A stretch of 46,536 bases of DNA from Dicyema japonicum (lineage: Eukaryota; Animalia; Dicyemida): contig RDEW01000001.1 of assembly GCA_011109175.1 (NCBI GenBank), positions 892,171 through 938,706 on the forward strand, given 5' to 3'. Under the pieces are notes generated by a model that saw nothing but the letters and a program-made list of their open reading frames with translations, had not been told where the DNA came from and searched no databases. A program made the position numbers and the translations under genes. Below are positions 2,558 through 44,931 of the stretch, piece by piece. How positions within the stretch are numbered: the first letter of the stretch is position 1; every line of letters begins with the position of its first letter.

Positions 2558-3316
2558 ATGCTTGAAATTTTTCCCCCACAAGACAGCATCGAAGGAAACT
2601 TGAATTCCTGCCCACTATGCAACAAATTCTGCTCACATTTTGGCGCACTAAAAATGCACATGAGAATTAAACACGAGTCCTCGATGGTTTGCTAATTTAA
2701 ATATATAATATTAAAATAATTAGTAATATTATTGAAATAGGAACAAATTTGGCTCAAAAACACCAGCATCTCATTAAATTCTAAATTTTTATATTGCTGC
2801 AGCACGTGCGCGAAAAAATATCCAACTTTTCAAGCTCTCAAAAAGGTTTTTTTCTGCCTAAATTAAAAGCATTGTTTGCGTTCCCATGACAACCGTGGGA
2901 CCTTATGTCCAAAATGCAAGCTCAAGATGACTCCACCAGATAGTCATCAGTGTCCTATCTATGTTTGTGAGGACTGCAGTAAAGTCTTCAATCTCCGCCA
3001 ATCTCTGTCTATCCATCGTAAGAGGAAACTCCATAAAAGGAAGATTTTTCCTAGACCTCATTTGGCTGGCAATTTTGATGGTTTCTATTCCGGTGATGTT
3101 GACCACTTGAAAGGATTTAATAATGTGGGGGTTCAGACCTTTCAGCCATATAATATCACGCGTGGTGTCTGTACACAGAATTATCCCACCTATGGACAGG
3201 GCTTTAATTCATTAGGAGACTTTGAATACCCATTTTTGATGGACCCATTGAATGGGAGACATTATGAAACTGCTGAGACTCAAACTATGTTGGATTATGA
3301 CTTGGATTATTTATAA
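2558..3316 (+). CDS. C2H2 zinc-finger protein, about 226 aa; exons 2558-2686, 2741-2845, 2870-3316
   Basis: Removing GT-AG introns of 54 nt and 24 nt joins CPLCNKFCSHFGALKMHMRIKH, CSTCAKKYPTFQALKK|HCLRSH (finger completed across the intron), CPKC..SHQC and CEDCSKVFNLRQSLSIHRKRKLH in one frame ending at TAA. Confidence 0.8.
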
Positions 3317-5049
3317 TAGGTTATATTTGTTTCTATTACTGAGGACTTGCTTGTTTAATAAGGCTGATTTGGCTGGTGAAGATTTTCGTTAGTAAACCAA
3401 AAGTTTTTTATTTATGCGGGTCGCCAATCTAATTAAGACAAAATGGTCGAAATTATGTACTTGCCGATTAAAATACGAAAATTATTACCCAATTGTCCCA
3501 TTTGTTTGGAGATATCAAGAATCCTAGCCCACATGCCAATGATTTATTCCGTCGGACCGCTTAGAACGTTACCATTAAACTAAATGTCTGTTCAGAGTTT
3601 GCATACATGAGATTTCATTATTAAAAAGAATTGGTTGACAGATTCATTCAGATGAAGAATGTCGTTGCTCACTTTCCCATTAATTTGGAAATTGTCAAGA
3701 GTTGCTGCACTGAAACAAATAACTTTGTACAAGGATAGCATTATTAATTTGATTTTTTTGTTGAAGCATGTCGTTCTATCATTTGGAAGTTTATTCACTT
3801 TTAAAACGAGTAAAAAACAAAGTTATAATTGAACAGTTTTTTGCTGTTAACTTTCAGACTCTTTGTGTAATTATTCTAGACTGTTAGGGATGAATTTTCT
3901 TTTTCTCATTTTCCTCGTTCAGATTCACGAGCAAACATATCAGTACCCTCAACAGCATTGATTCTGGGTAATCGGAACTATTTGGAGGATTTTATCAACT
4001 TAATCTTTGCACCATGTGAAGCTTATGAGTCTTACATTAATCGGGTTGATCTCTATTGATATTAATTACTTCATTCAACGACTGGAATCCTGACTCCTTC
4101 TCTTATCCTGGTGCATCTACGATTTCTTTGCTACATCGAATATAATTGAATTATCTCTGTGTCTCTTTTAATGCTACTTTTCTGTCAGCCACCAGCTTCT
4201 TTCACTTGAAGGGACTGGCTTTAAATAGTAATTCAGTCCATGTACTCCAGGGATGTAAAATTATGACAAGGTAGAAAAATGTATTCAATTTATGTCATTT
4301 TTTCTGACTACGATGGATTCCTGCCCTCAACCGCTTTCAAAAAACCGACGCCGCTTATCTGAGATACCACAAAACACTCAGATACAAAGAATGGAAAGAG
4401 ACTGCATAGACCGCACTGAAGGCTACTAATTCTTTCAGAATAAGTACCGTTACGGTTATAATGCTATGAATTAACGCGACTGAAGTTGACTGAGGAGTAA
4501 AGAAAACAAAGTCTTTCACCAATCGACATGATTTTTGACACATGATCGACCACATTTTCAAAAATCGATATTCAAGACAAAACCAAACGTCTTCCACTTA
4601 GAGTTCCTAAAGCAGTTTTCATAGCATTTAAAATTAAGGGATTTTTTAATATAAGGATTTCTTAATTGCATCAGTAAAGTAAAGAGTTATAAGAAACAGA
4701 AAATCAATTTGCGCTATTAGGCACATGAAAAGAAAATCGGCAGAACTTAGTATTTCTCCGTGCCTTTACAGTTTTTCCCCGGGATACAGCGGGTCTACTG
4801 CGTTCTCTAAAATGTTGGAAGAACAAAAGTGTCGATCCACGTGGCAACGCAAATTTAAATAATAGTAACCTTAATAAGACAATAATCACCAGTTAAACAC
4901 TAATTAAAAGGAAAAGGCCATTAGGTGATCCCGTCTTCAATCATCGATATTTTCATCATTTCCCGTTTGTTCTCGGTAATCGAAGCATTTTTGATAACAT
5001 CGTTCTTCTGGTGGTTTTCCATTTTGCAGTAAATATGCCACCCTATTTC

Positions 5050-5830
5050 CTCACAAGGACCTCAAATGAGGTTACTAGTAGTCATGTGATTTGATAGATT
5101 TCTTTGGTCATACTGGAGTGAGATTAGTTAATTTATCCATATTTGTTCTAGCAAGTTTTGTTCCCCTTGCTGCACATCCATAACTTATAGTTGGCTCGAT
5201 GTATTGGGTACACAACGTGAATAGTGACCGGTTTAAGGATCCTTTAAATTTTGAGACGAGCAACTTCACGAAGTTAAGCTTTTGTGCCATTGCACTGATT
5301 ATGTTTGAGACATGTGTGCTGAGGTTATGATGGTGTTGAATGTTACTCCAAGAATCTTAGCTTGTTTCTGTGTGGGAATAGTTCACCATTCAAAAATTGT
5401 TAAGCGAATAACTTGATAGTCTTCTATTTTGCGTAAAAAGAAAAGTCGAGCACTTTTTTGTGGAGACGGACATTGAATATGTGTTCAACAATTCATGATG
5501 TTCGTCCACACTAGTTTGTAATGTATTTGTAGCTGACGTAATACATATATCCTTACAAGCATAAATGATGTCATCAGCATAAGTAAGGGTAATTAAATTT
5601 CCTTTGATTCAATTGGAATATCGTGTTAAATCAGTTAAAAAACGACAGTGACAGGGAGAACCCTGTAGTACGCCGCTGGAAAAAATTTTGAACCGATTGG
5701 GGGGATTTTGTTACGACCTTACTTCTTCGACCAATGAGTAAGTTTCAGGACCATCTTTTGAAAATGCTTGGGATTTCTCAGGATAGATCTTCCTCTACAT
5801 TTTTCTGGAGACCGATTCCATAGCCCTATT
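5050..5830 (-). mobile_element. Degenerate LINE reverse transcriptase fragment
   Basis: Minus strand gives SSGVLQGSP, TLTYADDII and LCTQYIEPTISYGCAARG (RT motifs and thumb region) with frameshifts. Confidence 0.75.
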
Positions 5831-5959
5831 AATTTTTATATTATTTTATTTTATTGAACCAAAAAAGTAAATAAAATTATAAATTTAAAATTCATTACAA
5901 ATAAATTAATTTAATTTTATAAATATTAAAATAAAAAATTGTGTAATAAATATATAATC

Positions 5960-6280
5960 ATGGATGCAGCGTGCCACCATGTGATGCTGCGTGGATAATT
6001 GGTTCAAGTTTTCTGTTTGTCTGTCTATTCCTCCTCTCTCTTCCTATTAGAGTGGCGTTATGTGATCCACCAGTATAGGTGGCACCCAGTTCCTGGCTGG
6101 CACGAAAAAGGATCATTTTTTCTCCCCCACTCAACTGGAGGGTTTTTCACAACTCCAAATATGGACGTCTTCTACCGCTATTGTTGATTCCGGATTGACT
6201 TTTTATGTGGAAGTGGAAACTGGATGTTACTTTAATTTCTTTCTCGGTGTTTCCGTGGTTAATAAATTTTAATTTTAAAC
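5960..6280 (+). mobile_element. Dispersed ~250-bp unit, probable LINE 3' end (copy 1 of at least 5)
   Basis: GGTGGCACCCAGT...GAAAAAGGATCATTT...GGAGGG...ATGGACGTCTT...GGAAACTGGAT...CTCGGTGT..CCG.GGTTAATAAATT recurs at 25750-25990(+), 32560-32730(-), 34560-34800(+, diverged) and 39510-39800(-). Confidence 0.65.
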
Positions 6281-6478
6281 GGAAATAACATTCAAAAAGA
6301 CTTATCAAATTCAAATACAAGACAGGACTATTCGGTAATTAACATATATATTTAAATTGTTTAGTCGCACATGAACGTTGTAATTCAGTTATGGAAATAA
6401 CGAAAAGAATCTTTGTTGAATTACTGGATCGCCTAAGGATTCCTAGTAATCCTTTTACTTATAGACGAAAATTTCTTG

Positions 6479-6965
6479 TATGAATAAATTTTACAATAAA
6501 GTGATTATTATCCAATAAAAAGTATTTAGTGGTAGAACGTTCATTATCTGAGTATTTTCTTAAAAATAAACTTAATGCTGTACTACCCATCGAATAATTT
6601 TAGGAAACCTTCGTTCTGGAAGAGGGCAACTGAAATATATTGAAAATTCACCGAAAAGACATTTATCAACGTTACGAGATGGGTTGTATGGAGACCATAA
6701 AGATATTGTACCCCACTTTACGACACGTGTAATNTGTATTAATAAATTTTACAATAAAGTGATTATTATCCAAAAAAAGTATTCAGTGGTAGAACGTTTA
6801 TTATCTGAGTATTTTCATAAAAATAAACTTAATGCTGTACTACCCATCGAATAATTTTAGGAAGCCTTCGTTCTGGGAGAGGGCAACTGAAATATACTGA
6901 AAATTAACCGAAAAGACATTTATCAACGTTACGAGATGGGTTGTATGGAGACCATAAAGATATTG
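6479..6965. repeat. ~230-bp direct duplication flanking a single N (probable uncollapsed haplotypes)
   Basis: 6479-6707 vs 6736-6965 show about 9 differences; N at 6734. Confidence 0.85.
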
Positions 6966-8377
6966 GGTCGAGCATAGCAAAAAAATCTAAAAAACCTACT
7001 TCTAAGAAACAGCTCTCTTTAGAACTGTCCGCATCTGTGAGGCATCAACACACTTCAAGAGAATTTCATTAAATTAGATACACGATTCATTTTACAAGCG
7101 AATCTGTAAACAACATGAGCTCATATGAGTTCGTGGGATCCCAGAAATCAAACTACGTTAAATAAAATTCTTCCGCCATCCTCTTTATCTCCATAGTTTA
7201 TTTGGATAGTTTGCTTTCAATTTGATTAAAATTTTATTTCCATCAAAACTCATAGTTAATTTTTTTTCAATAAAATTTTTACGGTAGATTGTCAATTTTA
7301 ATAAATTTTTCTCGAAGAAATAAGATCAGCGCCTTTAAATAATAATAAAGCCTTTTTACGAGAGCCATAATATTTATAGCTCCGCATAGGCAGGACACAC
7401 ACTTTATTTAAGTAAAGAACAGTTTATTTTAACTAATCGTAGAACCAAGGAATGATCTTCACGTCTTTTTTTCTTTTTCTTGTGTGTGGGTCCTTTCNTG
7501 TCAGTGAGAATCAGTAAGAATTTACAAAAAATGTCCAATCGGCATAAAAAGGTTCTAGAAAAATTCATCACTGATATATTCAAAGGAGCACGCAAGAAGA
7601 GGTTGAATTTTTGTTCTCTTAATATTATTATAAAAATGTGATTGGGGATTAATTTGGCAATATGAACCACGTGGGCGGCTTAGATGAATTTACCGGTTAC
7701 CCCTAAAAATTGCACTTAGATGGTGCTTCTTTGATATTTGATTGAAAATCTATTTGTCAGCTTACAATTCTTGATTTCATTAGCAAAGACCATGCAAGTT
7801 ATTAACTAAATCTTCCCTTGAATGTGGGGCGAGCATAGCGAAAAAATCTAAAAAACCTACTTCTAGGAAACAGCTTTTTTTAAGAACTGTCCGCATCTGT
7901 GAGGCATCAACTCACTTCAAGAGAGTTTCAGTAAATTAGATACACGATTCATTCCACAAGCGAATGTGTAAACAAGATGAGCTCATATGAGTTTTTGGGA
8001 TCCCAGAAATCAAACTACGTTAATAAAATTCTTCCGCCATCCTCTTTATGTCATCCTCTTTATCTCCATAGTTTATTTGGATAGATTGCTTTCAATTTGA
8101 TTAAAATTTTATTTCCATCAAAACTCATAGTTAATTTTTTTTCAATAAAATTTTTACGGTAGATTGTCAATTTTAATAAATTTTTCTCGAAGAAATAACA
8201 AGATCAGCGCCTTTAAATAATAATAACAGCCTTTTTACGAGAGCCATAATATTTATAGCTTCGCATAGGCAGGACACACACTTTATTTAAAGTAAAGAAC
8301 AGTTTATTTTAACTAATCGTAGAACCAAGGAATGATCTTCACTTCTTGTTTTCTTTTTCTTGTGTGTGGGTCCTTTC
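6966..8377. repeat. ~530-bp direct duplication around N at 7498 (probable uncollapsed haplotypes)
   Basis: 6966-7497 is repeated at about 7826-8377 with scattered substitutions and short indels. Confidence 0.85.
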
Positions 8378-9370: not shown

Positions 9371-9449
9371 ATTTTGTTTATTTTATTTAACGCAAGACCA
9401 CGGTAAAACAAAACTAATTATCACGTGATACCGATGCATTTTAACAATG

Positions 9450-12343: not shown

Positions 12344-12570
12344 NNNNNNNNNNNNNNNNNNNNNNNNNNNNNNNNNNNNNNNNNNNNNNNNNNNNNNNNN
12401 NNNNNNNNNNNNNNNNNNNNNNNNNNNNNNNNNNNNNNNNNNNNNNNNNNNNNNNNNNNNNNNNNNNNNNNNNNNNNNNNNNNNNNNNNNNNNNNNNNNN
12501 NNNNNNNNNNNNNNNNNNNNNNNNNNNNNNNNNNNNNNNNNNNNNNNNNNNNNNNNNNNNNNNNNNNNNN
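12344..12570. other. Assembly gap (N run)
   Basis: Run of N; ORFs spanning it are artefacts. Confidence 1.
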
Positions 12571-14699: not shown

Positions 14700-15100
14700 T
14701 TCTACCTGAGGGGAGCTATAACTGATATGGCTTATCGGAAAGTGCAAGTATTATTATGAGACATCCAGATTGCTACTTCAATATTGCAACAAAATCTGGA
14801 CTTTCTTAACGAATGGTTGCTGAAGATCCCCCTGTCTACCAGCACTGAGAAGTCCATCACAACTCTCTTCTCATCAAACAAGAGACTGGGAGGACGGAAA
14901 TTGTGTTTTTCAGTTAGAATGTTTCAATAGATCCTTGGGGTGATTTTTGATATGCACGTGTCATTCTCGCATGTTGAAAATGTTATAACAAAATGTGAAA
15001 AGAAGATCAACTTGTTGTTAAATGTCTCTCTGACTTATGCAAGATCGAGGCTAGTCTCAAAAGAGCCTCCAAAATTACGAAACGATGGACATCTAGAGAG
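14700..15100 (+). mobile_element. I/Jockey-group LINE RT/thumb fragment
   Basis: DIQIATSILQQNLDFLNEWLLKIPLSTSTEKSITTLFSSNKRLG...ILGVIFDMHVSFSHVE aligns with ORF 24546-25262. Confidence 0.8.
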
Positions 15101-15922: not shown

Positions 15923-15995
15923 GCCTGATTAGCTCAGTCGGTAGAGCATCGGACTTTTAATCCGATGGTCGCGGGTTCGAGTCCCGTATCAGGCT
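15923..15995 (+). tRNA. tRNA-Lys(UUU)
   Basis: Acceptor stem GCCTGAT/ATCAGGC, D arm TAGCTCAGTCGGTAGAGC, anticodon arm TCGGA-CTTTTAA-TCCGA, T arm GCGGG-TTCGAGT-CCCGT, followed by a T-run terminator. Confidence 0.97.
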
Positions 15996-17661: not shown

Positions 17662-18627
17662 ATGGTTGATCTTATGTGCTAATAATTTTAGGTTCTCGTC
17701 AAAGTAGTGAAAAACAAAGCTTATTTTAAAAGATTTCAGGTTAAGTTCAGACGTCGTAGAGGTTAATCCATTAATGACGCTTAGATTGTCTTACAAACTA
17801 TGCCCGCAGAAGAAAATTGGTGACCCAATACAATGACAAATATGGAGCACCAAAACACAGACTCGTTGTTAGAATAACCAACAAATACGTCATTTGCCAA
17901 ATTGTCGTGTGTAAACTCAACGGAGACCACGTGGTATGTTCTGCCTACTCACACGAATTGCCTCGTTATGGAGTCAATTTCGGCCTAAGCAATTTTTCTG
18001 CTGCTTACTGCACTGGACTGCTTTTGGCTAGAAGAGTACTAGCTAAGTACGGACTGGATACTCTATATGTGGGGAACACTGACCCTGAGAAGATTGGAGA
18101 TGACTATAATGTTGCCCACGTGAACGGTGAGAACCGTCCTTTGAAAGTCTTCCTTGACATCGGACTTGCTACTTCTGTTAGAGGAGTCAAGGTTTTTGCT
18201 GCCTTGAAGGGGGCCCTTGATGGTGGTCTTGAGATCCCCCATGGGTTGAAGTAATTGCTTAGTTTAGGACTAAGAAGTTCGCTAAGGACTTTAGAGACAG
18301 GATTCTTGGAAAGCACGTGGCTGACTATGCGGCCATGCTGAAGAATACTGACAGCGAAAAATTTGCTAAGCAGTTCTCCAAGTTGAGTACCCAAGTGACT
18401 CCTGAAACTATGGCTGAAGTCTATCTGAGATGCCACCAGAAGATCCGAGAGGATCCTTCCCCAGCTAAGAAATCAGAGGAGACGCCTAAGAAATCGTGAG
18501 TGCTTCCATTTACTGCTGTAGTGTTGACGTCAAGATTTCCAAGCTTACAGGATCTCAGCGTAAGGCTAATGCCAAGGAGAGGAAGACTGAACTGGGAAAT
18601 TTGTTCTCCATTCAGGAAGCAGTTTAG
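17662..18627 (+). CDS. RPL5: 60S ribosomal protein L5 (uL18), 288 aa; exons 17662-17664, 17692-17761, 17785-18244, 18268-18495, 18522-18627
   Basis: Spliced product MVLVKVVKNKAYFKRFQVKFRRRR...RLVVRITNKYVICQI...SAYSHELPRYGV..GLSNFSAAYCTGLLLARR...LDIGL...VFAALKGALDGGLEIPHGTKKF...HVADY; four GT-AG introns of 27, 23, 23 and 26 nt; total 867 nt ending TAG. Confidence 0.97.
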
Positions 18628-19108: not shown

Positions 19109-19381
19109 TCAGCACTTTATCGCCTATTAAGGAAATGGTGTAATTACTTTTTAATATGACTTTTGTTTATTTTAGTTATGTATTTGATATTCGTGTAATT
19201 CTGTTTAAATAATTTGGGATATTGCAGTAGAATATTAATCGAAGTCAGCACTTTATCGCCCATTAAGGAAATGGTGTAATTACTCTTTAATATGACTTTT
19301 GTTTATTTTAGTTATGTATTTGATATTCGTGTAATTCTGTTTAAATAATTTGGGATATTGCAGTAGAATATTAATCGAAGT
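19109..19381. repeat. Tandem duplication, period 136 bp
   Basis: Two near-identical units starting TCAGCACTTTATCGCC. Confidence 0.9.
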
Positions 19382-22779: not shown

Positions 22780-23470
22780 CCTTGAATCTCAATATGAAGC
22801 TCAGCCGAGAATTACCAAAGAATATGATTTGAAGAGCTATCGGCAGCTTTAAAGAAACACCTCTTGATCCCACAGATTGAGGGACTGGATCAAAATTTCG
22901 TACAAGACTACTCAATCGACCCTTTTGGAGAAGAACTACATGCATCGTGGGACTTGCATTCTGTCAGTCTCTTCCCCACAGTGGTGCTTGGCTGAACACG
23001 TTTCCATCATCTTCAATTGGTTCCCTTCTGGAACAGGACGCCCTCCGAAATGGGATATCTATTCGTATCGGGATCACCTGTGCCAGCCTCATCCGTGTCG
23101 TTGTGGATCCGTTGTGGAATGCAAAAAGCTTCATCCGCTTTCTTGCCGTCTCAAAAGTAACCGGTTCCCGAGGCATACCGCCATCAACGGGGTTGTGAAG
23201 CGCTTTTTTGAGGTGGTTGAATTCCCATCATCTCTGGAACCTGTGGAGATGGAAAGCACCCGGATGGGGTGACTGCCTTCCTCTTCTCTCGGGGAAATAG
23301 TTGATTTGTAATGGGGCCTGCATCGACAACTTTTCCGAGCCGAGACTTTAAGGCTTTGCTTTGAAAGCCAGGGAAGCTGCTCGAACTTTCGAGAATGTCA
23401 AAATAAGAAAATATGACAGCCTTTCAAAAAGATTCTACGTACAGAAAGTAGTCTTCGGGCTCACGACGGT
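22780..23470 (+). mobile_element. CRE-clade retrotransposon fragment (zinc knuckle + RLE)
   Basis: SLPHSGAWLNTFPSSSIG / HPCRCGSVVECKKLHPLSC...RFPRHTAINGVVKR...LEP...PDG...KIRKYDSL, with frameshifts. Confidence 0.85.
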
Positions 23471-23886: not shown

Positions 23887-24169
23887 CACGGCGTATAAAT
23901 TATTCTCTTGACAGCTGAAAGGCTCAAATATAAAATAAGAATTAACTCAGGAATCATTGGATCACAAGAGGAATGCCTATTCCGTCAGATTGGGTCAATG
24001 ATTTATAAAGTCAACAAGGATATCTTCGAGACTAGATGACTTCGAGACGAATCTCAAAAGCTATTATCGATTGAAACATCAAGCCCACTTAATCAAAATT
24101 AAGTTTACTATTTTTAAAAATAATAAATTTTTTTTATCACAATAAATTATTTTAAAATGAATTAAATTT

Positions 24170-25750: not shown

Positions 25751-26125
25751 GAGTGGCGTCATGTGATTTACTAGTATGGGTGGCACCCAGTGCCAGGCCG
25801 GCATGAAAAAGGATCATTTGCTCTCCCCCACTCCACTGGAGGGGTTTCCACAACTGCAAGAATGGACGTCTTACCATTTATGTTGATTCCGGGTGGACTC
25901 TGTTTCTGTAGAAGTGGAAACTGGATACACTTAATTAGTTGTTTACTTTATTTAACTTCTCGGTGTATCCGGGGTTATTAAATTAAACAACCATCCAGAG
26001 GAGTTCACCCTGGACGGCATCTCCTTCAAGTTCGATCATGCAAAGAAGGATTATGGTCCCTTGATCACCTGAATTTTTTCATTCTGGCTAGGTCGGTGTT
26101 TTTCTGGTTCAATAAATTTAAATAT
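25750..26125 (+). mobile_element. Two further stacked LINE-like 3' ends (25750-25990 and 25990-26125)
   Basis: Each ends in (C/G)TCGGTGT-N-GG(G)TT-W-TAAATT directly after the previous element's tail. Confidence 0.6.
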
Positions 26126-26179
26126 CGTTTATTTAACTGTGTGAGGCAATACTTGGGTTTTTTCAACTGTACGTTTAAT

Positions 26180-26760
26180 ACCCTTTTTTATTGGAATGAA
26201 CTGAGTCAAATATTATCCTCACGGGGAAACTTTATACGTGTACTATAGAGATCGATGGAGGCTACTTGAACATATACTAGGATTGGATTTGAGGGCTTGG
26301 CAAGCGTGAAATCTGAAAACAACATTGACGGAAAAGTCTTACACTATGATCTCTGAAGGATTAGGAAGCTACTCATGTCCGTAGAAGTTATCGACGAACT
26401 ATGCACACAACGAGCAGATTGAAATTTAAGGAATAGTTTCTCGAGTTGCACGTGCCTTGTCTTGGTCACCAAGATACAATGAAAAGAGAGAGGTGGGAAT
26501 ATTTAAACATATTCTCAGAATAAATCCAACAGAATTCATGCTATGGAAGCATACCATGAGTGCACTCGAGGATATAGAGGACGACTCAGACACACATTAA
26601 AAAGGACCTAGGAGCTCAAAAAGAGAAGCTAGAAGACTTGAAAACCTTGATGACCTCTACGAAATTGCATCCTCGAGAGGATCGTGGTGCCTCCGACAGT
26701 CAGTATTCTGCCACAAGCGACGAGAAAATCTCACTCAGTTTATGTTAACTTGGTGTATCC
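26180..26760 (+). mobile_element. RTE-like LINE C-terminal fragments
   Basis: RWRLLEHILGLD, YRGRLRHTL and LENLDDLYEIASSRGSW resemble the RTE-type ORF end. Confidence 0.55.
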
Positions 26761-28019
26761 TATATCTTCCGTAGATCAACAAGAGAAGTTACATCCATCT
26801 TAAGACATTTGTAGTGGATACCTTCTAACTTTAACCTTACTAAAGTACTATATAAGAATAAGACACCCACGTGACTAAATATACCATCACTAGTGACTGA
26901 TAAGCCAATTATACACAATAATTCTATCACGTGGACGACTGTCAGTGTCGATGACAATCTCCACTCAGTCAGCACAAACTGGGATAACAAATAGATCAGG
27001 TCCCTTCTCCACAAGTGCATCGTTCGCCCTTCAAACATGATCTTGTTTTAAAGGTACATTAACAAAATTTATTTCCTAACAACTAAGAAATTCAGACCAG
27101 CACGTGCTAGGTAACGTTGGTAATAGAAACGTAAATTCTTATATCAAAAAGTATATTTTATAGGATTCGCACAGGAAATCTCACTGATAAGTCACGTGGG
27201 TGACTCTCGAACCCCCATTGTTTTGCCACCTCGACGACCCATTCTCAAATGTTGTCTCTGCGTCACAAAATAAGCTAAAAAGATACTCAATCTTGGAGAT
27301 CTATACCACCCCCTCAAAATCGTAACTTTGGATCAAAGGAGACCCTTGTGCAGAGGATAGACATCACATGAGTAATACCCCCATTTATTTGCAAAATGAT
27401 GGAATATCCACTAACCAATCATATGGTTGAACTAAAGGTGCGACCCTCCTAAGAATATCCAAGAACATACTTCTCAATATAGACAGTTTAAAGAGGCCTG
27501 TCTAAATGCCACACGTGCATTACAGTTAGTATGAATATATGGTTTTTAGTAATAGTGACAAACATGTAGGCGTCATCAGTTAAATATAAAATCATGATTA
27601 CCCAATAAAAACAACACATAATATGCTATATTGGATAAATTCAACGAATGGATTAGTTCATCATACGCCTAAACTAAATAAGAATATTAATTTAAACTAC
27701 AACCAACATAAGTACCACGTGAAAACACACTTTAAAATTTTAAATATATTTGTTTGTTCGATAATTAAATTTAAATAAATTATTTATGTTTACCATATAT
27801 ATTAGCTCAAAAAAATTTAATTATAAACATTCTCAAAGTATTTATTAAATAAAATAAAAATTTTCAAAATAGTTGGGAACGGTAGCCTGGCGCTCGTCCT
27901 GTAGCCATTACCAAACAACCAAGCAAACTATTTGGTAGTTGCAATTTATTCAGAAATAGCTAATAAATGGAAATTCTATTACAGATGTATGGAATTTATA
28001 ATAGCTTAATATGTCTCAG

Positions 28020-29603: not shown

Positions 29604-31030
29604 TCAGTGCTTGGTTCTCTTACTATCGCGGATTTCATCAAAAAGTAAAGCGTCGATAGAAAAGTCCTTTTTTATGGGAGAATTGGCATTTTTTGCTGGA
29701 TCTAATTTGCTTATCCGGCGTGGAACTATGCATGTCATCTCTTTGTTTTTCAATTTTGATTTAACGAAAATCTGATCGAATCTGAAACGTTCGAATATTT
29801 CCATTTGTTCAGGCAATGAAATTGCCTTTAAATCATTTTCTATTTTCTTTAAAACCTCTTTTGGAGGTATTCGTGGATCATATCCTTCTGAATGTCTTTT
29901 AAAGACTTCCCAATGATCACCTAATGTCATTATATCCTTGGTTTCTGGAAATTCCTCGACAATTTGTGGTTCAGGGTTAACGTTTGAAGTGACAGGATCC
30001 GCATTTGAGCTTCTAGCCAGCTTTCTTGATACTTTCTTCCTGAGTTTTGCGAGATTAGTTAACTTTGGAATTCTAATTTCCCTAGCTGGGCCATCCACCT
30101 TGACTTCTACTTCAAAATTGAGGACATGGTCATTCTTTGAACCAAAATATTCAATCAGGTCCTTCAAAATGACTTTTTCTGGCATCTCATTTTGATTGTA
30201 AAATATCCTTATCTTTAGTTTAATAATTCCAACAAAAACCTTAGGAGAACCGGCGAGAAGATATTTGTAGCAAATATGTGTCTTCAACGTACCAATGGAA
30301 GTCTCAGAGGGAAATAAAAGCATGTGACAGTTGACCTAAATTTTTATGGAATTCAAAAACATTAAAATCTGCTCCTGTGTTGGTTTTTGATGATTTCAAT
30401 TCATAGCAGAATGTTATGAAGCGATAGCTCACGTAAATCATGTTATGAAATCGTTTCTTAGGCTTCAGTCGAGGAGCATCACTCTCTACGTCTGATATCA
30501 TCATTTTAAAGGAACTTGTGGAGAGATCTGACTGATTTTCTAAAATTTAGAACTCCAAGTACTTTGCTGGATAATTCTCGCGATATTTCTTAGCACCGAG
30601 TCCTCTCTAAATCGCAATTAGGGTAATTATGCGGAACTACTTTAAGCTGATTGTTGTTACGACAACGCTGCAGATTGGACAGTTCACTGACGTCCTTAGA
30701 TGATCATAAATGCAATTTTCACAAACTGGGGGATAAAATAATTTTAATGAATCATAAAATAGCCTTAAACACACAGCACAATTGTTGCGGTTAACACAGT
30801 GACAATAAATCTACTTTAACATAAATTAAACTGACAAAACACGTGCTTAATGGTAAAGCATGATTTAGAAAGTGCATTTATGCAAACAGCAAGATTTGAG
30901 CTGATAAATCAAATATAATACAGGAATGAGGACAATCTGACGAAGAAATTGGGTTTTCCATGATTTTGCAACAAATTGAACAGTTTAGAAGACTCTCAAT
31001 GTCCCGAGAGAACAGTGAACGGATGTCCAT
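29604..31030 (-). CDS. Polycomb-group RING finger (PCGF/BMI1/Psc-like) protein, about 373 aa; exons 31030-30922, 30725-30641, 30606-30563, 30539-30361, 30335-30240, 30212-29604
   Basis: Splicing gives the C3HC4 RING CSICCKIMENPISSSDCPHSFCENCIYDHLRTSVNCPIC, then LKEDSVLRNIARII, then a RAWUL-like segment FITFCYEL...MLLFPSETSIGTLKTHICYKY...IRIFYNQNEMPEKVILKDL. Introns of 196, 34, 23, 25 and 27 nt are all GT-AG with consistent phases. Family assignment is from recalled motif similarity; start codon and last intron are uncertain. Confidence 0.72.
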
Positions 31031-32559
31031 AGAATCTGAGAATTGACGCTGGCAGATCAATTTTATAACGCTCAGTTAACGTAAGTCCGGTAACCGCATT
31101 ATTTCACCAATAAAATGCGACATTGGCCACTCCCTCTGTTTTTAGATAGTCCTCATCCACCGAAATCAAAAATCTAGCAAAAAAGTTTGTTCTCCCATAT
31201 TTAGTGACAAACAACTCCTGATTGATGTGATAAATGAACGAGAAAATACAATGCTGTGTCTTATTTTTGTGGTTATCTATTACCTCAATTTGCTTTGAAT
31301 TAGAATTTATGATAATTTTAGCTCACAAATACCGCAAATTATTTAGTGCATTCGTTTAACCACCATCACACCCAAAGGATGTAAAGGTAACCATATAGTT
31401 TATCTTGACTTATTTGGAAGCTGAAACAATAACATCAGCAAAAAATCATTCTCCAGGTTCCAATATATAGTCGGTATTCCCATGGACGATGCTTATTTGC
31501 TGTGAAAATCATGCCGTTCAGGAAAACCTATGATTCGTGTGGCAATCGCATTTCGTCGACGATTCCTTTAACCATTCTCTCAGCAGACGTTTAGAAGAAT
31601 TCAGGACGAACTTAACTAAGAACTTCTGTGAATTCAATTTTAGCTGCATTGCCTGCTCGCTGCATTGCCTTTTCGTTGGTTAGGAAAAGTCGATAGGAGA
31701 TCTTTTCTATGAGATTTTCAGTTATTGAAAGTTGCAGTAGATTATTTACTCTGTAGAACCTATATATTCTTAATGATTTTACTAACTCAGAAATGACCAA
31801 ATAGTGTTGAAACCGAGTTATTATGTGATCACAGTTTACATACGCTCTGATGTACCAAATTTAATTTTTTTAAAATTTTGCGTCCATTTTTTTAGAGAAA
31901 GTTAATCTGCCTTCTCGACATCGTCTAATACAGCCTAGCTGAGGATTTCTATGGCAATTAACAGAGACGCCAAGGTCCTAAACAATTGCTCCAGATTGAC
32001 GTTTTCAAAAAAAGGTTTCCAGGCGGTGATTTAACCCACAGATCTAGTAGACCCTGAAGAAGTTGAGAACTCTCCTAAAATCAAAGTCATTAAGTTATTA
32101 ACTAGACAACATGGAGAACTCCTTGAAGATACAAACTTGTAGAGCCTGTTAGTTTAATTTTCAAAAAAATCTGTTAATAAAAATTTTCAACAAACTAGTG
32201 AATCAGATTTTTAGCTCACACAGGATCAGTCTTGGAAAAGGCTGATACCTTAAAGTAAAAGAAATACGAATGTCGCTGTGGATAGTTCATTTTAAATCAG
32301 TAGCCGTGGAAAGTTCTTGAGTCATTGGAGGCAGATCACTGACCCTTCTGAANTGGAAAAGGCTGAGACCTTAAAGTAAAAGAAATACGAATGTCGCTGT
32401 AAATAGTTCATTTTGAAACAGTAGCTGTGGAAAATTCTTGAGTCATTGGAGGCAGATCACTGACCCTTCTGAACCGCATTGGATCACTTATCGGGAAAAA
32501 TGGATAATAGAAAGGGAATTGGCTTGTTGAGTACATTTCAGTCAATCCGGAATCAACAT

Positions 32560-32730
32560 AAAGGGTAACAGATGGCGATACTTGTAATTGTGGAAACCCC
32601 TCCAATGGAGTGGGGAAGAGAAAATGATTTTTTCATGCCAGCCAGGCTCTGGGTGCCACCTAAACACGTGGATCACATGACGCCACAACCTCAACCAATT
32701 AGTCACTTAGCACCACATGGCGCCACGCGG
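32560..32730 (-). mobile_element. Copy of the ~250-bp LINE-end unit
   Basis: Reverse complement matches the 6060-6200 and 25760-25900 segments. Confidence 0.7.
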
Positions 32731-32991: not shown

Positions 32992-33597
32992 CCGTATTTG
33001 CCGGTGTATAAGTCGACCGTTTTCGATCAAAAATCTACCTAAAAAATCGACCTCGACTTATACACCGAGTCATGAAATTCAACTTTGCATTCATCGCTTC
33101 AAATGTTATGGTAGTTACTACACTCTTCACAAAAAGTTATTAGCCAGTAAGAGCAGAGTAATGTGGTTGCCCCTACAAGGGCAGATATTGTGTTCACTTC
33201 CCTTAAAAAGACATATTATGTGTTCTCGTACGTGGAAGTTGCTCAGTACTTCTTGTGGCCGCCGTTCGCATCGACAACGGCTCAACTCTTCTTGAGATCC
33301 GAAGATGTTGCGAATCGATCTGCAAAGCAGAATCACTCGTCGATCGGCCTTGGACAAACGCTGAGTCGATCCAGGCATCCATACTTCCTGAACTTTCAAG
33401 ATGTTGCGAATCGATCTGCAAAGTTGAATCAATCGTCGATCGGCCTTGGACAAACGCTGAGTCGATCCAGGCATCCATACTTCCTGAACTTTCTCACCCA
33501 GAAGCCGACCTTGGCACTCCAAGAAAATCTGATATATCATAAAATTGTAAATTTCCGTCGAATTTTAGGGGGTCGACTTATACACCGGTAAATACGG
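32992..33597. mobile_element. Non-autonomous pogo/Tigger-type (Tc1/mariner superfamily) TIR element, 606 bp
   Basis: 27-bp TIRs CCGTATTTGCCGGTGTATAAGTCGACC (32992-33018) and GGTCGACTTATACACCGGTAAATACGG (33571-33597) with 1 mismatch, TA on both sides, and a subterminal repeat CGACTTATACACCG near 33054. Confidence 0.9.
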
Positions 33598-34800: not shown

Positions 34801-36405
34801 TGTATTAGAGCTACTTCTCTACAATTTGACTAATCCACCGGTGGATCAACCGGAAAAAATAATCTTCATGCATTGTGAGCTGATGGTTAATTGGTTGGAA
34901 GATTGGGGGTGTGACGTAACTATAAAGCACTAAATATTGGTGGAGATCATTGACGGATGGAGATCCTTCCTTCTCTTCTCGTTAGCAGAGACCTAGTGAT
35001 GGACTCGAACTCTCAAAAATTGCATAACACTTTCACCTCCAAAGATCATGATATAGCACGTGCTGAGCTAAAACGGAAGTATTGCAAACAGTGAGTCAGA
35101 TTCTGGGTAGGAAGAGTTATGGAAGAGTCTCAGATATATCCCCCAAAAAGTCATCCGTGCAGTATTTAGTAACAAGTCTAACCCTCAACCAATTGTAGGG
35201 GAAACGTCGCCGGTCTCAGAGAAAACCAATCGACTTTAAAACAGAATTATTTGATTTCAAATTTGCTATCACTAAACTACAACACAGGGTCATCCAGATT
35301 CCATGATTGCCACACCCACGTGAACCTCATATAAATTTTCAATTTCTAGAGATTTCTCAGTCAATCGATGGCTTTATGCTTGGGTTTAAAATCCACGTGA
35401 TGCCGATTAGCTCAGAAACTCCTGGTTATTTGCACTATTAAGAGACCACAACCGCAATAACTAATCTAATTTAATATTAATTATTAGAAAATGCCAACAG
35501 AAAGCATTTATTTAATTTTTATATTTAAGTTGATCTACTTTACCACTGGAGAAGAGCAGTATATAACTTCATCCACGGTTCCTTGTATACGAGACATGTA
35601 GATTGCGATTCCTTTTCAACAATTTTAATGAGCAATGGCACCACTTAAGAGGGGTCGTTGGAGTTGGGTAATCTCCTGATCACGTTGGTCAAACCTCATC
35701 TGGTATTCATTTGGATTAGGATTCCCGAGGGAGTCGTCTTACTTTTGTTTGTAAGCCTACTAAATGTCACTCCAACTTTTTTTACGTAGCTGAGATTTTT
35801 TGGACATTAGACCAAGAGATCAAAGTCCCATGAGGCGCATCCATGGGAAATGAGAAGAGAAGATTGTTTCCCCCTCTCGGTATAAGAATGTCAGTTGAAA
35901 ACAAAGGAGATAATACTGAAACCTGATCGAATATTCCTAATTATTGATCGAATATACCTAAGGCAATTCGTCCCCTTCGACCTCTTTCTCGTTTTCAGTA
36001 TTAATCGGATGTTCGTACATTTCCATAATTTTAAAATCGAATTGTGGTGTGTGTGTTAGCCTGGTCTAACTCAGAATTTTCCTTCACTTAATTAGAGTGG
36101 GCTCCAATGGATCCCTTTTCATTTTTCTTAATAATAAGTGAAATGCGTCAGTCTTTCAATAGTGTGTGCTTAATTATTACGTAATATCTTGCAATTCATT
36201 TACCTTCTTTGGGTTGAACTGTCATCTTCTGGTGGCCTTTCATTTGCCATCGAATTTACGAATAACCTTTCAGGCTTCGACAGTGCATGTAAATTATTTA
36301 AACGATTGCCAGTAAAGTAACATTAATTATAAATTTAAATTAAATTATAAAATAATTAAAAAATATTTTTTAAATAGATTTGTAAATAATTAAATAATAT
36401 TATCG

Positions 36406-38390
<1,985 letters not shown>

Positions 38391-38489
38391 TTTTATTCGA
38401 TTTACTAACCTTCATTTGTTTTTAATGACTAATTCTCGATTATAGGGTTTTTTCATTAGTTTCTATATTAAGCACTATTCTTTTATATA

Positions 38490-38945
38490 GACTGGTCCTT
38501 TCTTTATAGCGCCACTCTCATGCTATGCTACCTTAGTGTAATAACTTCCACTTTCAATCCGACTACCTTTTCCCGCCTAATGTAGTCTCTCATAAATGGA
38601 GCCACTTTCTTATGCCATGTTGCTATGTTATACTAATGACTTCCACTTGCAATCTGATTTCCTCCTCTCGCCAATATAGCCTCCTAAATAGAGCCTTTTC
38701 TCGAACTATGTCGTTGAGTTATACTAATAAGTTTTACTTACAACTCGACTACCTTCCCCCGCCAATTCAGTCTCATATAAAAGGAGCCATTTTCTTTTGT
38801 CATGTCGTTGAGTTATGCTAATAACTTCCACTTACAACTCGACTACCTTCCCCCCGACAATGCAGTCTCATATAAACGGAGCCATTTTCTCGTGTTATGT
38901 CGTTGAATTATGCTAATGGATCTCATCGGAATCTGATTACTTTCT
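38490..38945. repeat. Diverged minisatellite, 5 units of 90-95 bp
   Basis: The GCC anchor of the GAGCCA-like motif lies at 38511, 38601, 38693, 38786 and 38881; shared TATGTCGTTGA.TTAT.CTAAT and ACTT.CAA.TCGACTACC blocks. Confidence 0.8.
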
Positions 38946-39509
38946 ATTTAATTATTCGTTTTTAATGAGTTAGTGCTTGTTCTAGTTTTTTCAAAAAACG
39001 ATCTTTATCACGGTAACCTGTAGTGTCCCGCCATATAGAATGACTCATGGAATCATGCCTTCACTTATTAATGGAATCATTTAACTTGTCACGTGCTAAA
39101 AACAAATAAATAAAAAATAGTAAAAAAACATCATTTTCTGATTAAAATTAGTGAAAGCAGTTAATCGGAGTTATTATAAGCACTTTAAATGCTGCGTTGC
39201 CTCTCAAAATAGGAATCCACCAGATCAGCAGTAGGGGCATCGAGTTTGGGTTCTGAATGCGGAGACGTCACATGTTCTACAAATAAGACAGAAGTTTCAT
39301 CAACCCAATCATGTTAATTAGACTTTCAATTCTAAAAACCCCTTCTTCCTTAAGAAAAACAGCTTCTTCGTTGTCCTTTATTCATACCAACCACCAAATA
39401 TTTAATTAAATGAGTTGTCAGCTCCGAATGTTGGGTAGATTAGGTAAAGCTATCTCCCACCTTAGACCACCCGTCTCTCCCCTGCAAAAACAATAATAAT
39501 ACCTTTTAG

Positions 39510-39800
39510 CAACAACTAATTAAATGTATCCAGTTTCCATTGTCACAGAAACAGAGTCCTTCCAGCGTCACACGAGTCCATCCGTAACCACCATAAAAGG
39601 TAAAAGACGTCCATTCTTTGCAGTTGTAGAAGCTCCACCTAGTGGAGTGGGAAAGAGAAAATGATCATTTTTCGTGCTATCCTGACACTGGGCGCCACTT
39701 AAGACAAATGGATCACACGAGGCCACTCTAGTAGAAAAAGTTAGAGGAGGAACAGACGAAACAAAATATCTTAGGTTAAGTAACCACATGGCACCATAAT
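39510..39800 (-). mobile_element. Copy of the ~250-bp LINE-end unit
   Basis: AATTAAATGTATCCAGTTTCC...AGACGTCCATTCTTTGCAGTTGT...GAAAATGATCATTTTTCGTG is the reverse complement of the 25790-25935 type. Confidence 0.7.
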
Positions 39801-41680
39801 ATCGTTGGTACGCGGCTTATCCTTTATTCCACCACATCTAATAACTAAGTTAAATTTTTGTTTTTATTAATTTATATATTTTATTTATTTTTTATTTAAA
39901 TCCCAAGACGACCAAGAAAGAAAGGTTGCATTCACTAATTATGCGATTCCAATCTCCAATTTCTCCCGAACTCTNNNNAACAAAAAATCTTAGGTTAAGT
40001 AACCACATGGCACCATAATATCGTTGGTACGCGGCTTATCCTTTATTCCACCACATCTAATAACTATGTTAAATTTTTGTTTTTATTAATTTATATATTT
40101 TATTTATTTTTTATTTAAATCCCAAGACGACCAAGAAAGAAAGGTTGCATTCACAAATTATGCGATTCCAATCTCCAATATCTCCCGAACTCTCCTGAAT
40201 TGTTCCGTCAGCGGTTCAACTGCCCTCATGGTCCATCGGAATTCCTCTGCATGAGCCACCCTTTCTCTGAACGGGTTTCCTAGCTCCTTGTAGAAACGTA
40301 AGAGACCCTGGTCATTTCTCATCGTCGTCTCCTCAGAAAGTGTGATGAATGAACTATCGGCTTGCATGAGCCGTGTGTTTTGACGTTCGATCCTCAAAAA
40401 AGAAAGGGAAAATCTTTAGGATGGACAAGCATATTCAATAACTTGAAGGTAGAGTTTACTGATACGAGCTACAGGCGGAAGGGGTCTCTTCTTGATAATA
40501 TCTTTTAGAACATTTTACTTTCGATACTTCTTCTGTGTGATTAATTATGGGTTGAGTGCTTTGTCTGAGTGTATAATACAAAAAGGTCATTTTTGGTCAA
40601 AATTCCCATCTCCAATCGGATTCCTCCTCAATATGAGATTTAAGGTGGACATTTTCAAGCAAATCGTTTTCATGGATGATAAATAATTGGAGACCATTTG
40701 GAAATGAGATCTCTGCAGTTCCTTTCCCAAGTCTACAGCCTAGACCAAAAATCTAAAACTCAAATCAATGTATGGGCCATTTTATTATCCGTAATTTTTT
40801 GGGCCATTTTTTGAAATTAAATTAATAATTTTTTNGAAACAAAAAATCTTAAGCTAAGTAACCACATGGCACCATGATATCGTTGGTACGCGGCTTATCC
40901 TTTATTCCACCACATCTAATAACTAAGTTAAATTTTTGTTTTTATTAATTTATATATTTTATTTATTTTTTATTTAAATCCCAAGACGACCAAGAAAGAA
41001 AGGTTGCATTCACAAATTATGCGATTCCAATCTCCAATATCTCTCGAACTCTCCTGAATTGTTCCACCAGCGGTTCAACTGCCCTCATGATCCATCAGAA
41101 TTCCTCTGCATGAGCCACCCTTTCTTCGAACGGGTTTCCTAGCTCCTTGTAGAAACGTAAGAGACCCTGGTCATTTCTCATCGTCGTCTCCTCAGAAAGT
41201 GTGATGAATGAACTATCGGCTTGCATGAGCCGTGTGTTTTACGCATGATAGAGTTTATACGTTCGATCCTCAAAAAAGAAAGGGAAAATCTTTAGGATGG
41301 ACAAGCATATTCAATAACTTGAAAATAGAGTTTACTGATAAGAGGTACAGGCGGGAGGGGTCTCTTCTTGATAATATCTTTTAGAACATTTTACTTTCGA
41401 TACTTCTTCTGTGTGATTATGGGTTGAGTGTTTTGTCTGAGTGTATAATACAAAAAGGTCATTCTTTGGTCAAAATTCCCATTTCCAATCGGATTCCTCC
41501 TCAATATGAGATTTAAGGTGGACATTTTAAAGCAAATTGTTTTCATGGGTGATAAACAATTGGAGACCATTTAAAAATGAGATCTCTGCAGTTTCTTTCC
41601 CAAGTCTACAGCCTAGACCAGGAATCTAAAACTCAAATCAATGTATGGGCCATTTTTTGAGATTAAATTAATAATTTTTT
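39770..41680. repeat. Nested direct duplications around Ns (39975-39978, 40835) containing a minus-strand LINE remnant
   Basis: 39770-39974 recurs from about 39985; 39985-40830 recurs at 40840-41680 with few-percent divergence; minus frame VIEYACPS near 40430. Confidence 0.8.
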
Positions 41681-42170: not shown

Positions 42171-42224
42171 TTTCAAGACAAGGGAATTAGTTAGTTTGGT
42201 ATTACCATTGATTTTTGGAATAAT

Positions 42225-42635
42225 TTGATTAAACAAACATCCACACTGTTACTACGGAAAAAACTAATCGTTATCTCAATACCTTACGGAACAACGAGAT
42301 TTTCTAGAATGGCAAAGTCTCCTGAAAATCCCCTTAGGTCGGAAGTCAAACTTTATTCCACACTGTTACTACGGAAAAAACTAATCGTTATCTTAATACC
42401 TTACGGAACAACGAGATTTTCTAGAATGGCAAAGTCTCCTGAAAATCCCCTTAGGTCGGAAGTCAAACGTTATCGGGAAACATGCCTGAGATACGAGTAG
42501 AAACTCTTTTCGGAGATTAATAAAAGACTTCAAAATTAACCGCATGAGAAAGCATGGTATAGACACCGGGATCACTTAATTTAGAAGATAACCCTTCTAT
42601 TTTTTGTGATTCCCGTGTCAATAAATTAAATTAAG
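42225..42635 (+). mobile_element. LINE-like 3' end with internal 117-bp tandem duplication (42240-42468)
   Basis: Ends CCGGGATCACTTAATTT...CCCGTGTCAATAAATTAAATT like the other LINE termini. Confidence 0.55.
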
Positions 42636-43064: not shown

Positions 43065-44007
43065 NNNNNNNNNNNNNNNNNNNNNNNNNNNNNNNNNNNN
43101 NNNNNNNNNNNNNNNNNNNNNNNNNNNNNNNNNNNNNNNNNNNNNNNNNNNNNNNNNNNNNNNNNNNNNNNNNNNNNNNNNNNNNNNNNNNNNNNNNNNN
43201 NNNNNNNNNNNNNNNNNNNNNNNNNNNNNNNNNNNNNNNNNNNNNNNNNNNNNNNNNNNNNNNNNNNNNNNNNNNNNNNNNNNNNNNNNNNNNNNNNNNN
43301 NNNNNNNNNNNNNNNNNNNNNNNNNNNNNNNNNNNNNNNNNNNNNNNNNNNNNNNNNNNNNNNNNNNNNNNNNNNNNNNNNNNNNNNNNNNNNNNNNNNN
43401 NNNNNNNNNNNNNNNNNNNNNNNNNNNNNNNNNNNNNNNNNNNNNNNNNNNNNNNNNNNNNNNNNNNNNNNNNNNNNNNNNNNNNNNNNNNNNNNNNNNN
43501 NNNNNNNNNNNNNNNNNNNNNNNNNNNNNNNNNNNNNNNNNNNNNNNNNNNNNNNNNNNNNNNNNNNNNNNNNNNNNNNNNNNNNNNNNNNNNNNNNNNN
43601 NNNNNNNNNNNNNNNNNNNNNNNNNNNNNNNNNNNNNNNNNNNNNNNNNNNNNNNNNNNNNNNNNNNNNNNNNNNNNNNNNNNNNNNNNNNNNNNNNNNN
43701 NNNNNNNNNNNNNNNNNNNNNNNNNNNNNNNNNNNNNNNNNNNNNNNNNNNNNNNNNNNNNNNNNNNNNNNNNNNNNNNNNNNNNNNNNNNNNNNNNNNN
43801 NNNNNNNNNNNNNNNNNNNNNNNNNNNNNNNNNNNNNNNNNNNNNNNNNNNNNNNNNNNNNNNNNNNNNNNNNNNNNNNNNNNNNNNNNNNNNNNNNNNN
43901 NNNNNNNNNNNNNNNNNNNNNNNNNNNNNNNNNNNNNNNNNNNNNNNNNNNNNNNNNNNNNNNNNNNNNNNNNNNNNNNNNNNNNNNNNNNNNNNNNNNN
44001 NNNNNNT
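43065..44007. other. Assembly gap (N run)
   Basis: Run of N; the three long X-filled ORFs here are artefacts. Confidence 1.
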
Positions 44008-44268
44008 TATTCGAATTAATTTAGAATTCAATGCTTAATTCGCGTATTATCACGGATTTCATCAGAAAATAACGCGGCAAATGTTTGCTGATTCTAATTT
44101 GATTATTTGACGTAGAACTAAAAATGTTATTTCTTTGCTTTTGAGTTTCGGTTTACAAAAATCTGATCAAATCTGTAACGTCATCTCTGTTTTTTTGTTT
44201 CGGCTTACAAAAATCTGATCAATTCGATGATGGCGGAAATGTAATGAAACATTGAACAAGACTCCTTC

Positions 44269-44523
44269 TAAACAAAGAACCCCAGTGAAATGTAATTAAT
44301 CGCCTTGTAGACATCGCTTACTTTTTATATTTCTGAAATTTTTTTATTAATTTTATATTTTTAGAAAGTAATTTTGTTAAATAAAGTTTCCATTATAAAC
44401 AAAGAACCCCAGTGAAATGTAATTAATCGCCTTGTAGACATCGCTTACTTTTTATATTTCTGAAATTTTTTTATTAATTTTATATTTTTAGAAAGTAATT
44501 TTGTTAAATAAAGTTTCCATTAT
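44269..44523. repeat. Exact tandem duplication, period 127 bp
   Basis: Two identical units starting TAAACAAAGAACCCCAGTG. Confidence 0.9.
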
Positions 44524-44524
44524 G

Positions 44525-44710
44525 GTCTGCAGCCATTGAGCACGCTATGGGAAGTAACTCACAAGCCATCACGTCATTGTAGGTTCACCCTTCCGCTTCC
44601 CCGATTAAAACTCAGACGTGCTCGGGTCAATAACGCCAGACGTCTCAACTGGAAAACGAACCGGTCTACGATGTCTTGGTTATTCTTCCTTTTCGAATCT
44701 TTAGCAGTGT
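44525..44710 (-). mobile_element. Degenerate CRE 3' fragment
   Basis: Minus frames give QDIVDRFVF / PVETSGVIDPSTSEF. Confidence 0.55.
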
Positions 44711-44931
44711 AGGTACGGAACCCACGTGGAACGATGACTTTAGCATATTCCCATTAGAGAAAGTGTCCGTATACGTTGAATCCTAAGAAGACACCTCACT
44801 TGATTTCTGTTAAGATTAGGCCATTAGTGAATGATTCATTTGCTTTGGGAGCGTTAATTTGAGCATGAAAAATGCCAAATATTCATTAACGTTCTAGTAT
44901 TTAAAATAATCAATAATTATTTAGTGTGATT

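Follow-up and report, generated by a model that had tools for sequence, protein, structure and literature searches.

The DNA analysed here is a 46,536-nt stretch of the genome of the dicyemid Dicyema japonicum, a tiny parasite of octopuses (contig RDEW01000001.1, positions 892,171 to 938,706 of the forward strand; hereafter the window), and our subject is the palindromic hexamer CACGTG, which occurs in it 34 times. The published genome of this animal is 67.5 Mb in size with about 5,000 genes, a GC content of 36.7%, a mean intron of 38 bp and 49% repeats. The GC content of the window is likewise 36.7%, a little above the roughly 35% given in an earlier note on this DNA. A Pfam profile search with 60 open reading frames (ORFs) recovered only two conserved genes, fragments of reverse transcriptase (RT) and a weak C2H2 match. 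The first gene, RPL5 (17778-18496, plus strand), consists of two exons separated by a tiny intron and matches Ribosomal_L5e (2e-61) and Ribosomal_L18_c, with best homologues that are 61% identical. The second, encoding phosphoglucose isomerase (PGI; 36406-38387, plus strand), was delineated by the Pfam PGI profile, alignments to PDB entries and an exon map, and is divided into about 12 exons by introns of some 20-40 bp. In these conserved genes exons are separated by roughly 10-50 bp, the one clear intron being 22 nt, and neither product exceeds 61% identity to any protein in the libraries searched. The window also contains one comparatively intact long interspersed nuclear element (LINE), with its RT at 24185-25501 on the plus strand, for which a homologue search likewise gave only distant relatives (61% identity at most), and five or six decayed RT relics.

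Two independent counts of CACGTG agree on 34 copies; every start position listed in the earlier note was recovered and none had to be added. Positions called N were left out of both the counts and the expectations. In 100 dinucleotide-preserving shuffles the word appeared 3.63 ± 1.73 times, with a maximum of 8, and Markov models of order 1, 2, 3 and 4 predict 3.7, 5.7, 7.9 and 16.1 copies (Poisson P of 2e-21, 6e-16, 6e-12 and 7e-5, respectively). Higher-order models had been set beforehand as a test, and the excess persists at orders 2-4. Order 4 is too conservative a model, since the motif dominates the counts of its own pentamer CACGT; with the motif masked from the background, 3.0-4.4 copies are expected. 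The overall excess is 6-9-fold, and CACGTG ranks first among all hexamers under Markov orders 1, 3 and 4. The best other palindromic hexamer of the 64, GACGTC, reaches only about 2-fold. The counts of control palindromes made by eye were roughly right: CAGCTG occurs 5 times and CTCGAG 6 times, against about four claimed for each, and GACGTC 12 times, as claimed. Each quarter of the window holds 7-9 copies of CACGTG (a 6-7-fold excess over the zero-order expectation), and the variance-to-mean ratio of counts in 1-kb bins is 1.4. The excess is thus genuine, and it is confined to the perfect palindrome. All results on conservation, genes and repeat classes given below refer to this one 46-kb window.

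The specificity holds against the closest relatives of the word. The nine one-letter neighbour pairs of CACGTG together occur 92 times, where 92-99 are expected, and neither the CACGNN half-site words nor the hybrids CACGTC/GACGTG are enriched in the window. At the ±1 positions C is favoured (25 of 68 flanking bases, 12.5 expected, P=4e-4) and T is avoided, and in 14 of the 34 sites the bases on either side complement each other, as compared to 23% in control palindromes. Beyond ±1 no symmetry was seen around the 34 sites, and a longer hairpin or cruciform was rejected on this ground. The element is an exact 6-bp word, weakly extended to 8 bp by C or G at ±1. GACGTC, the core of the CRE or C-box, is a second palindrome with an ACGT centre and a much weaker excess over the whole window (12 seen, 4.4-8.1 expected); three of its 12 copies have even one TGACGTC half (6164, 19406 and 25865), and none is a full TGACGTCA. 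A linked G/C-box system was rejected given this modest excess and the flat hybrid words.

CACGTG is the canonical class-B E-box. A possible explanation of its abundance, if a somewhat doubtful one, is that natural selection keeps the copies as sites for an abundant class-B dimer of basic helix-loop-helix proteins with a leucine zipper (bHLH-Zip), of the Max/Mlx/USF/TFE type, which would serve as a chromatin or 'self' mark, that is, as a general mark on host DNA and not as a gene-specific regulator. The identity of the core counts for such a mark, and so does the preference for C/G over T at ±1, which presumably resembles that of Myc/Max rather than that of USF/TFE. HLH genes are also among the best retained transcription factor families of the published gene set, with 14 members next to 16 homeobox and 13 C2H2 genes. 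The expansion of bHLH proteins envisaged in the earlier note is not borne out, as 14 lies below the number in every animal compared (25-108). Transcription factors moreover tolerate near-cognate sites, yet the graded tolerance expected of bHLH-Zip E-boxes is not seen among the one-off variants and hybrid half-sites, which stand at expectation. Such an all-or-none pattern would resemble recognition by an enzyme of the restriction/modification type more than graded binding by a transcription factor.

Methyl-directed repair had been put forward as one possible source of the excess. In its Vsr-type form, a ratchet acting on T:G mismatches, it predicts that the deamination products CATGTG/CACATG should be depleted. 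We count 29 of these words, or about 26 after subtraction of overlaps and a duplicated copy, where 16-19 are expected; the product word is at or above expectation, and the Vsr-type ratchet was rejected. The apparent excess of CATGTG/CACATG is not used as evidence here.

The earlier note placed seven of the sites in exons, and seven is what we find: three in the coding sequence (CDS) of RPL5 (17928, 18117 and 18314, all in phase 0 and encoding His-Val) and four in that of PGI. The PGI sites at 36744 and 36856 are in phase 0 as well (His-Val), that at 37706 is in phase 2 (Ser-Thr-Cys) and that at 37891 in phase 1 (Pro-Arg-Gly), so that the seven phases over the 734 codons (2.3 kb) of the two genes read 0, 0, 0, 0, 0, 1 and 2. 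His-Val pairs occur six times in these codons; Val is encoded by GTG in all six and the pair by CAC-GTG in five, the sixth being CAT-GTG. From codon usage elsewhere in RPL5 and PGI, CAC-GTG is expected to account for 8.8% of His-Val pairs (P=3e-5). When all phases are considered, seven of the nine places where the proteins are compatible with CACGTG are occupied by it. Shuffling codons among synonymous positions, with the protein and the codon usage kept, gives a mean of 1.0 site, and shuffling codon order gives 0.5 expected sites; no shuffle out of 20,000 reaches seven under either scheme. Among all hexamers, CACGTG has the highest z-score in the exons of the two genes. The pressure towards CACGTG bends synonymous codon choice.

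The imprint may extend to the residues themselves. His-Val pairs are more frequent than expected (6 compared with 2.2, P=0.02), and five of the seven coding sites use residues that are rare or absent in homologues. A site-encoded Val stands where 24 of 31 PGI homologues have Met, a site-encoded Thr where 27 of 36 homologues have Val, and one RPL5 site puts His before a conserved Val. At 18314 in RPL5 both His and Val are conserved in homologues, and at 36744 in PGI the His is conserved and the Val is found in 8 of 29 homologues. Taken together, 6 of the 13 site-encoded residues match the homologue majority, a share not clearly different from the overall 55-60% identity of the proteins. Since RPL5 and PGI are only 55-60% identical to their relatives, the residue-level effect is suggestive, not proven: that CACGTG sites overwrite conserved residues is partly supported by these alignments. 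PGI has one further peculiarity. An in-frame TAA (38231-38233) falls exactly at a conserved Gln, in the context Asp-TAA-Trp-Gly, and is followed by a 22-nt GT..AG intron (38242-38263) and by Val-Glu-Leu-Gly-Lys; a sequencing error, a pseudogene allele, editing and readthrough are all possibilities.

It is very unlikely that the sites are ordinary regulatory E-boxes of local promoters and enhancers. Two groups of sites would suit that explanation: three that lie 1.0-1.35 kb upstream of the PGI start codon (35057, 35317 and 35394), and the densest cluster of the window, in which seven copies (26449, 26868, 26928, 27101, 27193, 27512 and 27716) occupy 1.3 kb of ORF-poor DNA with no convincing reading frame. 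However, seven sites lie inside coding exons in all three phases, and RPL5 has three in its CDS and none in the 2.8 kb upstream of it, the nearest upstream copy being that at 14955. With the quarters of the window equally rich, no concentration at promoters or enhancers is seen, in agreement with what had been reported. The earlier note also gave two sites in introns; the tiny introns of RPL5 and PGI contain no CACGTG.

Most of the remaining sites are in unclassified unique DNA. Among them are the copies at 2803 (64 bp before the C2H2-like ORF at 2867-3313) and 4838, at 7668-7673, at 11099 and 11259, at 30840-30845, and five between RPL5 and the LINE (19677, 20312, 22238, 22358 and 22627). One copy (39090-39095) is found 0.7 kb downstream of PGI and another (44723-44728) in unclassified DNA 717 bp after a long gap. 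The least secure site, 6724-6729, is 5 bp from a single-N join between the copies of a 257-bp duplication. Sites outside RPL5 and PGI fall in shorter six-frame ORFs (median 50) than random positions or neighbour words do (59-63), and therefore most of them appear to be non-coding; a motif confined to exons or mRNA was rejected for the same reason.

Three sites are in recognisable transposon DNA, and in each case related copies lack the word. The site at 9422-9427 belongs to a decayed LINE RT relic on the minus strand, where the sister copy near 412 reads CAAGTG and the more intact LINE has Tyr-Met in a protein-level alignment. In a second RT relic, with its site at 14955-14960, the more intact LINE has His-Met (CACATG, protein-aligned position 25224). 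The third site, 32665-32670, is in one copy of a four-copy dispersed repeat, the others reading CTGGTG (about 6070), CTAGTA (about 25770) and CAAATG (about 39700). The earlier observation that at 9422 and 32665 only one copy of a repeat family has the site is thus confirmed; its statement that many sites lie in decayed LINE/CRE debris is borne out only in part, by these three. The RT relics hold two sites in 2.4 kb, where 0.3 are expected (P=0.04), and on comparison with related copies the relic sites look like gains made after insertion, in dead elements. The most intact LINE itself lies in a site-free stretch of 3.8 kb (22633-26448). We detected no PHD, REL or bHLH domain in its ORFs. Its tail, to about 25500, has a post-RT motif of the 'LYK..(I/V)..(L/V).Y....W' type, as in APE-type (Jockey/CR1-like) elements, and the label 'CRE' may be inapplicable to this copy. 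A tRNA-Lys gene with anticodon UUU (15923-15995, plus strand; Rfam, 77 bits) is located just downstream of a decayed LINE relic.

The densities differ by class. Conserved CDS has seven sites in 2.29 kb (15.6-fold over the zero-order expectation), unclassified unique DNA 23 in 30 kb (7.4-fold), and DNA with transposon evidence, that is, dispersed repeats and RT relics, three in 10.4 kb (2.2-fold). CACGTG is densest in conserved coding sequence, less dense in old unique DNA and in decayed relics, and sparsest in repeats that are more intact or can still be recognised. The earlier note had read the word as a function-blind iterated palindrome acting at the level of DNA. The core of that reading is upheld, with sites in all three codon phases, synonymous choice overridden, and further copies in unique ORF-poor DNA and dead LINE relics; the density is not uniform across sequence classes. 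What keeps CACGTG far above its compositional frequency is a force that acts at the level of DNA and takes no account of reading frame or of where genes begin and end.

Could this force be a context-dependent mutation bias, without a dedicated reader, by which, for example, polymerase or repair chemistry makes CACGTG faster than it decays? The presence of sites in all sequence classes, dead transposon relics included, is what one would expect from it, and, compared with related LINE copies, several of the apparent gains are transitions (ATG to GTG and TAC to CAC, for example). However, a mutation bias should also raise the overlapping sub-words and half-sites, but only the full palindrome is raised, and it predicts the densest sites in neutral DNA, whereas conserved coding DNA is the densest here. 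We know of no mutational process with 6-bp palindromic specificity, and consider a bias of this kind improbable.

Less probable again are footprints of mobile DNA, be they target-site duplications left by an element with CACGTG as its insertion site or copies of a short dispersed repeat containing the word. The flanks of the 34 sites are diverse and mutually unrelated, and therefore no single repeat family is involved, a point on which the earlier note was correct. Only two sites are in DNA that is repeated within the window, and two lie within 100 bp of repeat boundaries, where 5.9 would be expected; a target-site duplication was rejected for this lack of any excess at repeat edges. Mobile DNA, furthermore, cannot produce the exonic sites.

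An artefact of assembly or sequencing is the least credible explanation of all. The assembly does contain unmerged overlaps at single-N joins, and site 6724 is beside one of them, in a 25-bp stretch that is unconfirmed by the duplicated sequence across the N. Eleven tandem arrays are present in the 46 kb. One (38539-38917) has four copies at 76% identity, and the other ten have almost exactly 2.0 copies at 93-100% identity (6476-6965, 19109-19381, 23633-23886, 32233-32473, 33302-33493, 39760-40193, 42240-42473, 44269-44523, 45561-45784 and 46099-46536). Four arrays straddle single-N positions (6734, 32353, 39975-39978 and 46322). The two-copy arrays look like unmerged overlaps of contig ends or haplotypes rather than biology, and they slightly inflate repeat content and word counts. 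However, none of the duplications contains a duplicated CACGTG, so no site was counted twice, and double counting was rejected. No site comes within 700 bp of the long N runs (12344-12570 and 43065-44006), whose flanks do not overlap. Two of the coding sites encode His-Val pairs that other eukaryotes have as well (at 18314 this applies to both residues, at 36744 to the His, next to a Val that is common there), and to our knowledge no platform error writes a specific palindrome.

Independent DNA was available as contigs of one 2019 sample and of a small 2017 sample. The 2019 contigs, from a sample labelled as the same organism, cover 35000-39200 end to end and show no intron joints, and therefore behave as DNA. 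Over this interval their divergence from the assembly is about 2% in PGI exons and 3-5.5% between genes, mostly through transitions. Among the 40 differences listed, out of 177, none creates or destroys any of the eight sites in the interval, where only 0.5 hits would be expected; that no listed difference to these contigs, diverged by 2-4%, touches a site also speaks against an artefact. In the seven-site cluster (26449-27721) the share of 31-mers in common with the 2019 sample is 0.47-0.53, which implies a divergence of about 2%, as low as in exons; this is a hint, no more, that the cluster may be under constraint. The divergence of 2-5.5% means that the population is highly diverse, or else that the sample is pooled or comes from a cryptic species, and a sample so diverged would be useful for polarising gains and losses of CACGTG. 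In contigs of both samples a junction leads from 36323 back to 35035 across 34 extra letters, and 2019 contigs also join 35068 forward to 36310 with seven extra letters. These junctions fit a templated insertion of roughly 75 bp or a structural variant near 36310-36323 on the other haplotype; a circle junction of the 1.3-kb segment is possible as an alternative for the joins between 35035 and 36323.

The data rule out E-boxes of promoters, one repeat family, duplicated target sites, a motif of mRNA only, a ratchet of the Vsr kind and double counting. They are compatible both with a non-adaptive fixation bias and with selection that maintains a bound mark. We lean, at rather less than an even chance, towards the former: a motif-directed fixation bias, exerted through biased repair or gene conversion and linked to a modification or nicking enzyme. 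The reader would be a dimer, symmetric and as all-or-none in its specificity as an enzyme; a site-specific methyltransferase would be one example, a nicking or cleaving enzyme another. When an allele with the site pairs with a variant allele, the mismatch would be repaired towards the site, as motif-directed biased gene conversion. New sites would then be fixed more often than they are lost, and would accumulate with the time that a sequence has spent in the genome. We favour the fixation bias because of the all-or-none specificity, the sites in dead relics and the apparent replacement of conserved residues; such a drive can fix changes that are costly to the protein, such as Met to Val and Val to Thr in PGI.

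A bHLH-Zip mark maintained by selection fares less well on these points. Sites arise in dead LINE relics, and conserved enzyme residues appear to be replaced by sites. At about 0.75 sites/kb, 67.5 Mb would contain tens of thousands of sites, each of which would need selection, and the effective population of a dicyemid parasite is probably small. In favour of the mark, CACGTG is densest in host genes and sparsest in transposons.

Several considerations weigh against the fixation bias. Both the reader protein and the conversion bias are pure inference. The highest density is in constrained coding DNA, which fits selection at least as well as drive. The contrast between transposons and the rest is weak in this window: by itself it is not significant (P=0.12), and with all other DNA as the reference it is marginal (P=0.04). 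One-off neighbours show no depletion, although a weak drive predicts a depletion of less than 20%, which is below the resolution of 46 kb. Dicyemids may self-fertilise, and this would starve a drive that depends on heteroduplex. Finally, conservation of the sites of HIP1 (GCGATCGC), a highly iterated cyanobacterial palindrome (PMC5861425; PMC4390886), has been read as selection together with a structural role and not as biased repair (PMC5861425), a reading that counts for the bHLH-Zip mark.

Full-text literature searches returned no CACGTG excess in dicyemids and no iterated palindrome in any eukaryote, just as the earlier note knew of no eukaryotic description, and neither motifs nor methylation are mentioned in the Dicyema genome paper. 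For dicyemid somatic cells, programmed elimination of chromatin has been reported, along with selective amplification, as cited in PMC6543705, and CACGTG might therefore also be read as a rearrangement mark. In one version, which we regard as a long shot, the word would be a sequence-encoded 'self' mark, by which a dimeric reader tells host DNA from transposon-rich DNA during chromatin elimination and amplification. If so, genes and old host DNA would be saturated with CACGTG and newer mobile DNA would not.

For the iterated palindromes of cyanobacteria, which disregard gene boundaries, 30 years have brought no explanation, and an animal genome with an iterated palindrome would mean that forces of this kind also act on DNA outside the prokaryotes. 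In the two genes studied the pressure is strong enough to determine codon pairs, and probably also residues, of a ribosomal and a glycolytic protein, and it distorts the codon-usage and substitution models used for dicyemid phylogeny. The word may also help with the genome rearrangements of dicyemids, which are poorly understood. With 67.5 Mb and about 5,000 genes, a dicyemid is tractable for separating drive from selection.

Among known systems HIP1 is comparable in being an exact short palindrome far above compositional expectation, found within and between ORFs in any frame, with an imprint on codon choice, and not explained as a peptide, RNA or promoter motif. It differs in being bacterial and 8 bp long, whereas the dicyemid word is 6 bp, belongs to an animal nuclear genome and coincides with the E-box; its excess is 15-300-fold, compared with 6-16-fold for CACGTG (6-9-fold overall and 16-fold in CDS). 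HIP1 is linked to a cognate methyltransferase, and none is known for CACGTG in dicyemids; HIP1 is further characterised by sites that are better conserved between related genomes than their flanks and by a periodic spacing of 10-90 kb. The class-B E-box, G-box or CDEI element, bound by Myc-Max, USF, TFE/MITF and yeast Cbf1, has an identical core, a symmetric dimer as its reader and a weak flank preference. However, its known sites are regulatory or centromeric and number from some hundreds up to a few thousand, none is known to be written into coding sequence at a cost in codons or residues, and near-cognate variants are usually bound. Very-short-patch repair by Dcm/Vsr in enterobacteria, acting at CCWGG, is similar in that repair tied to a methylated palindrome shifts word frequencies genome-wide, but it predicts a depletion of the T:G product words that is not found for CATGTG/CACATG. 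The DUS and USS words of Neisseria and Haemophilus are bacterial, non-palindromic and dependent on natural transformation; what they may share with CACGTG is the spread of a short word through genes and spacers alike by molecular drive and not by local function.

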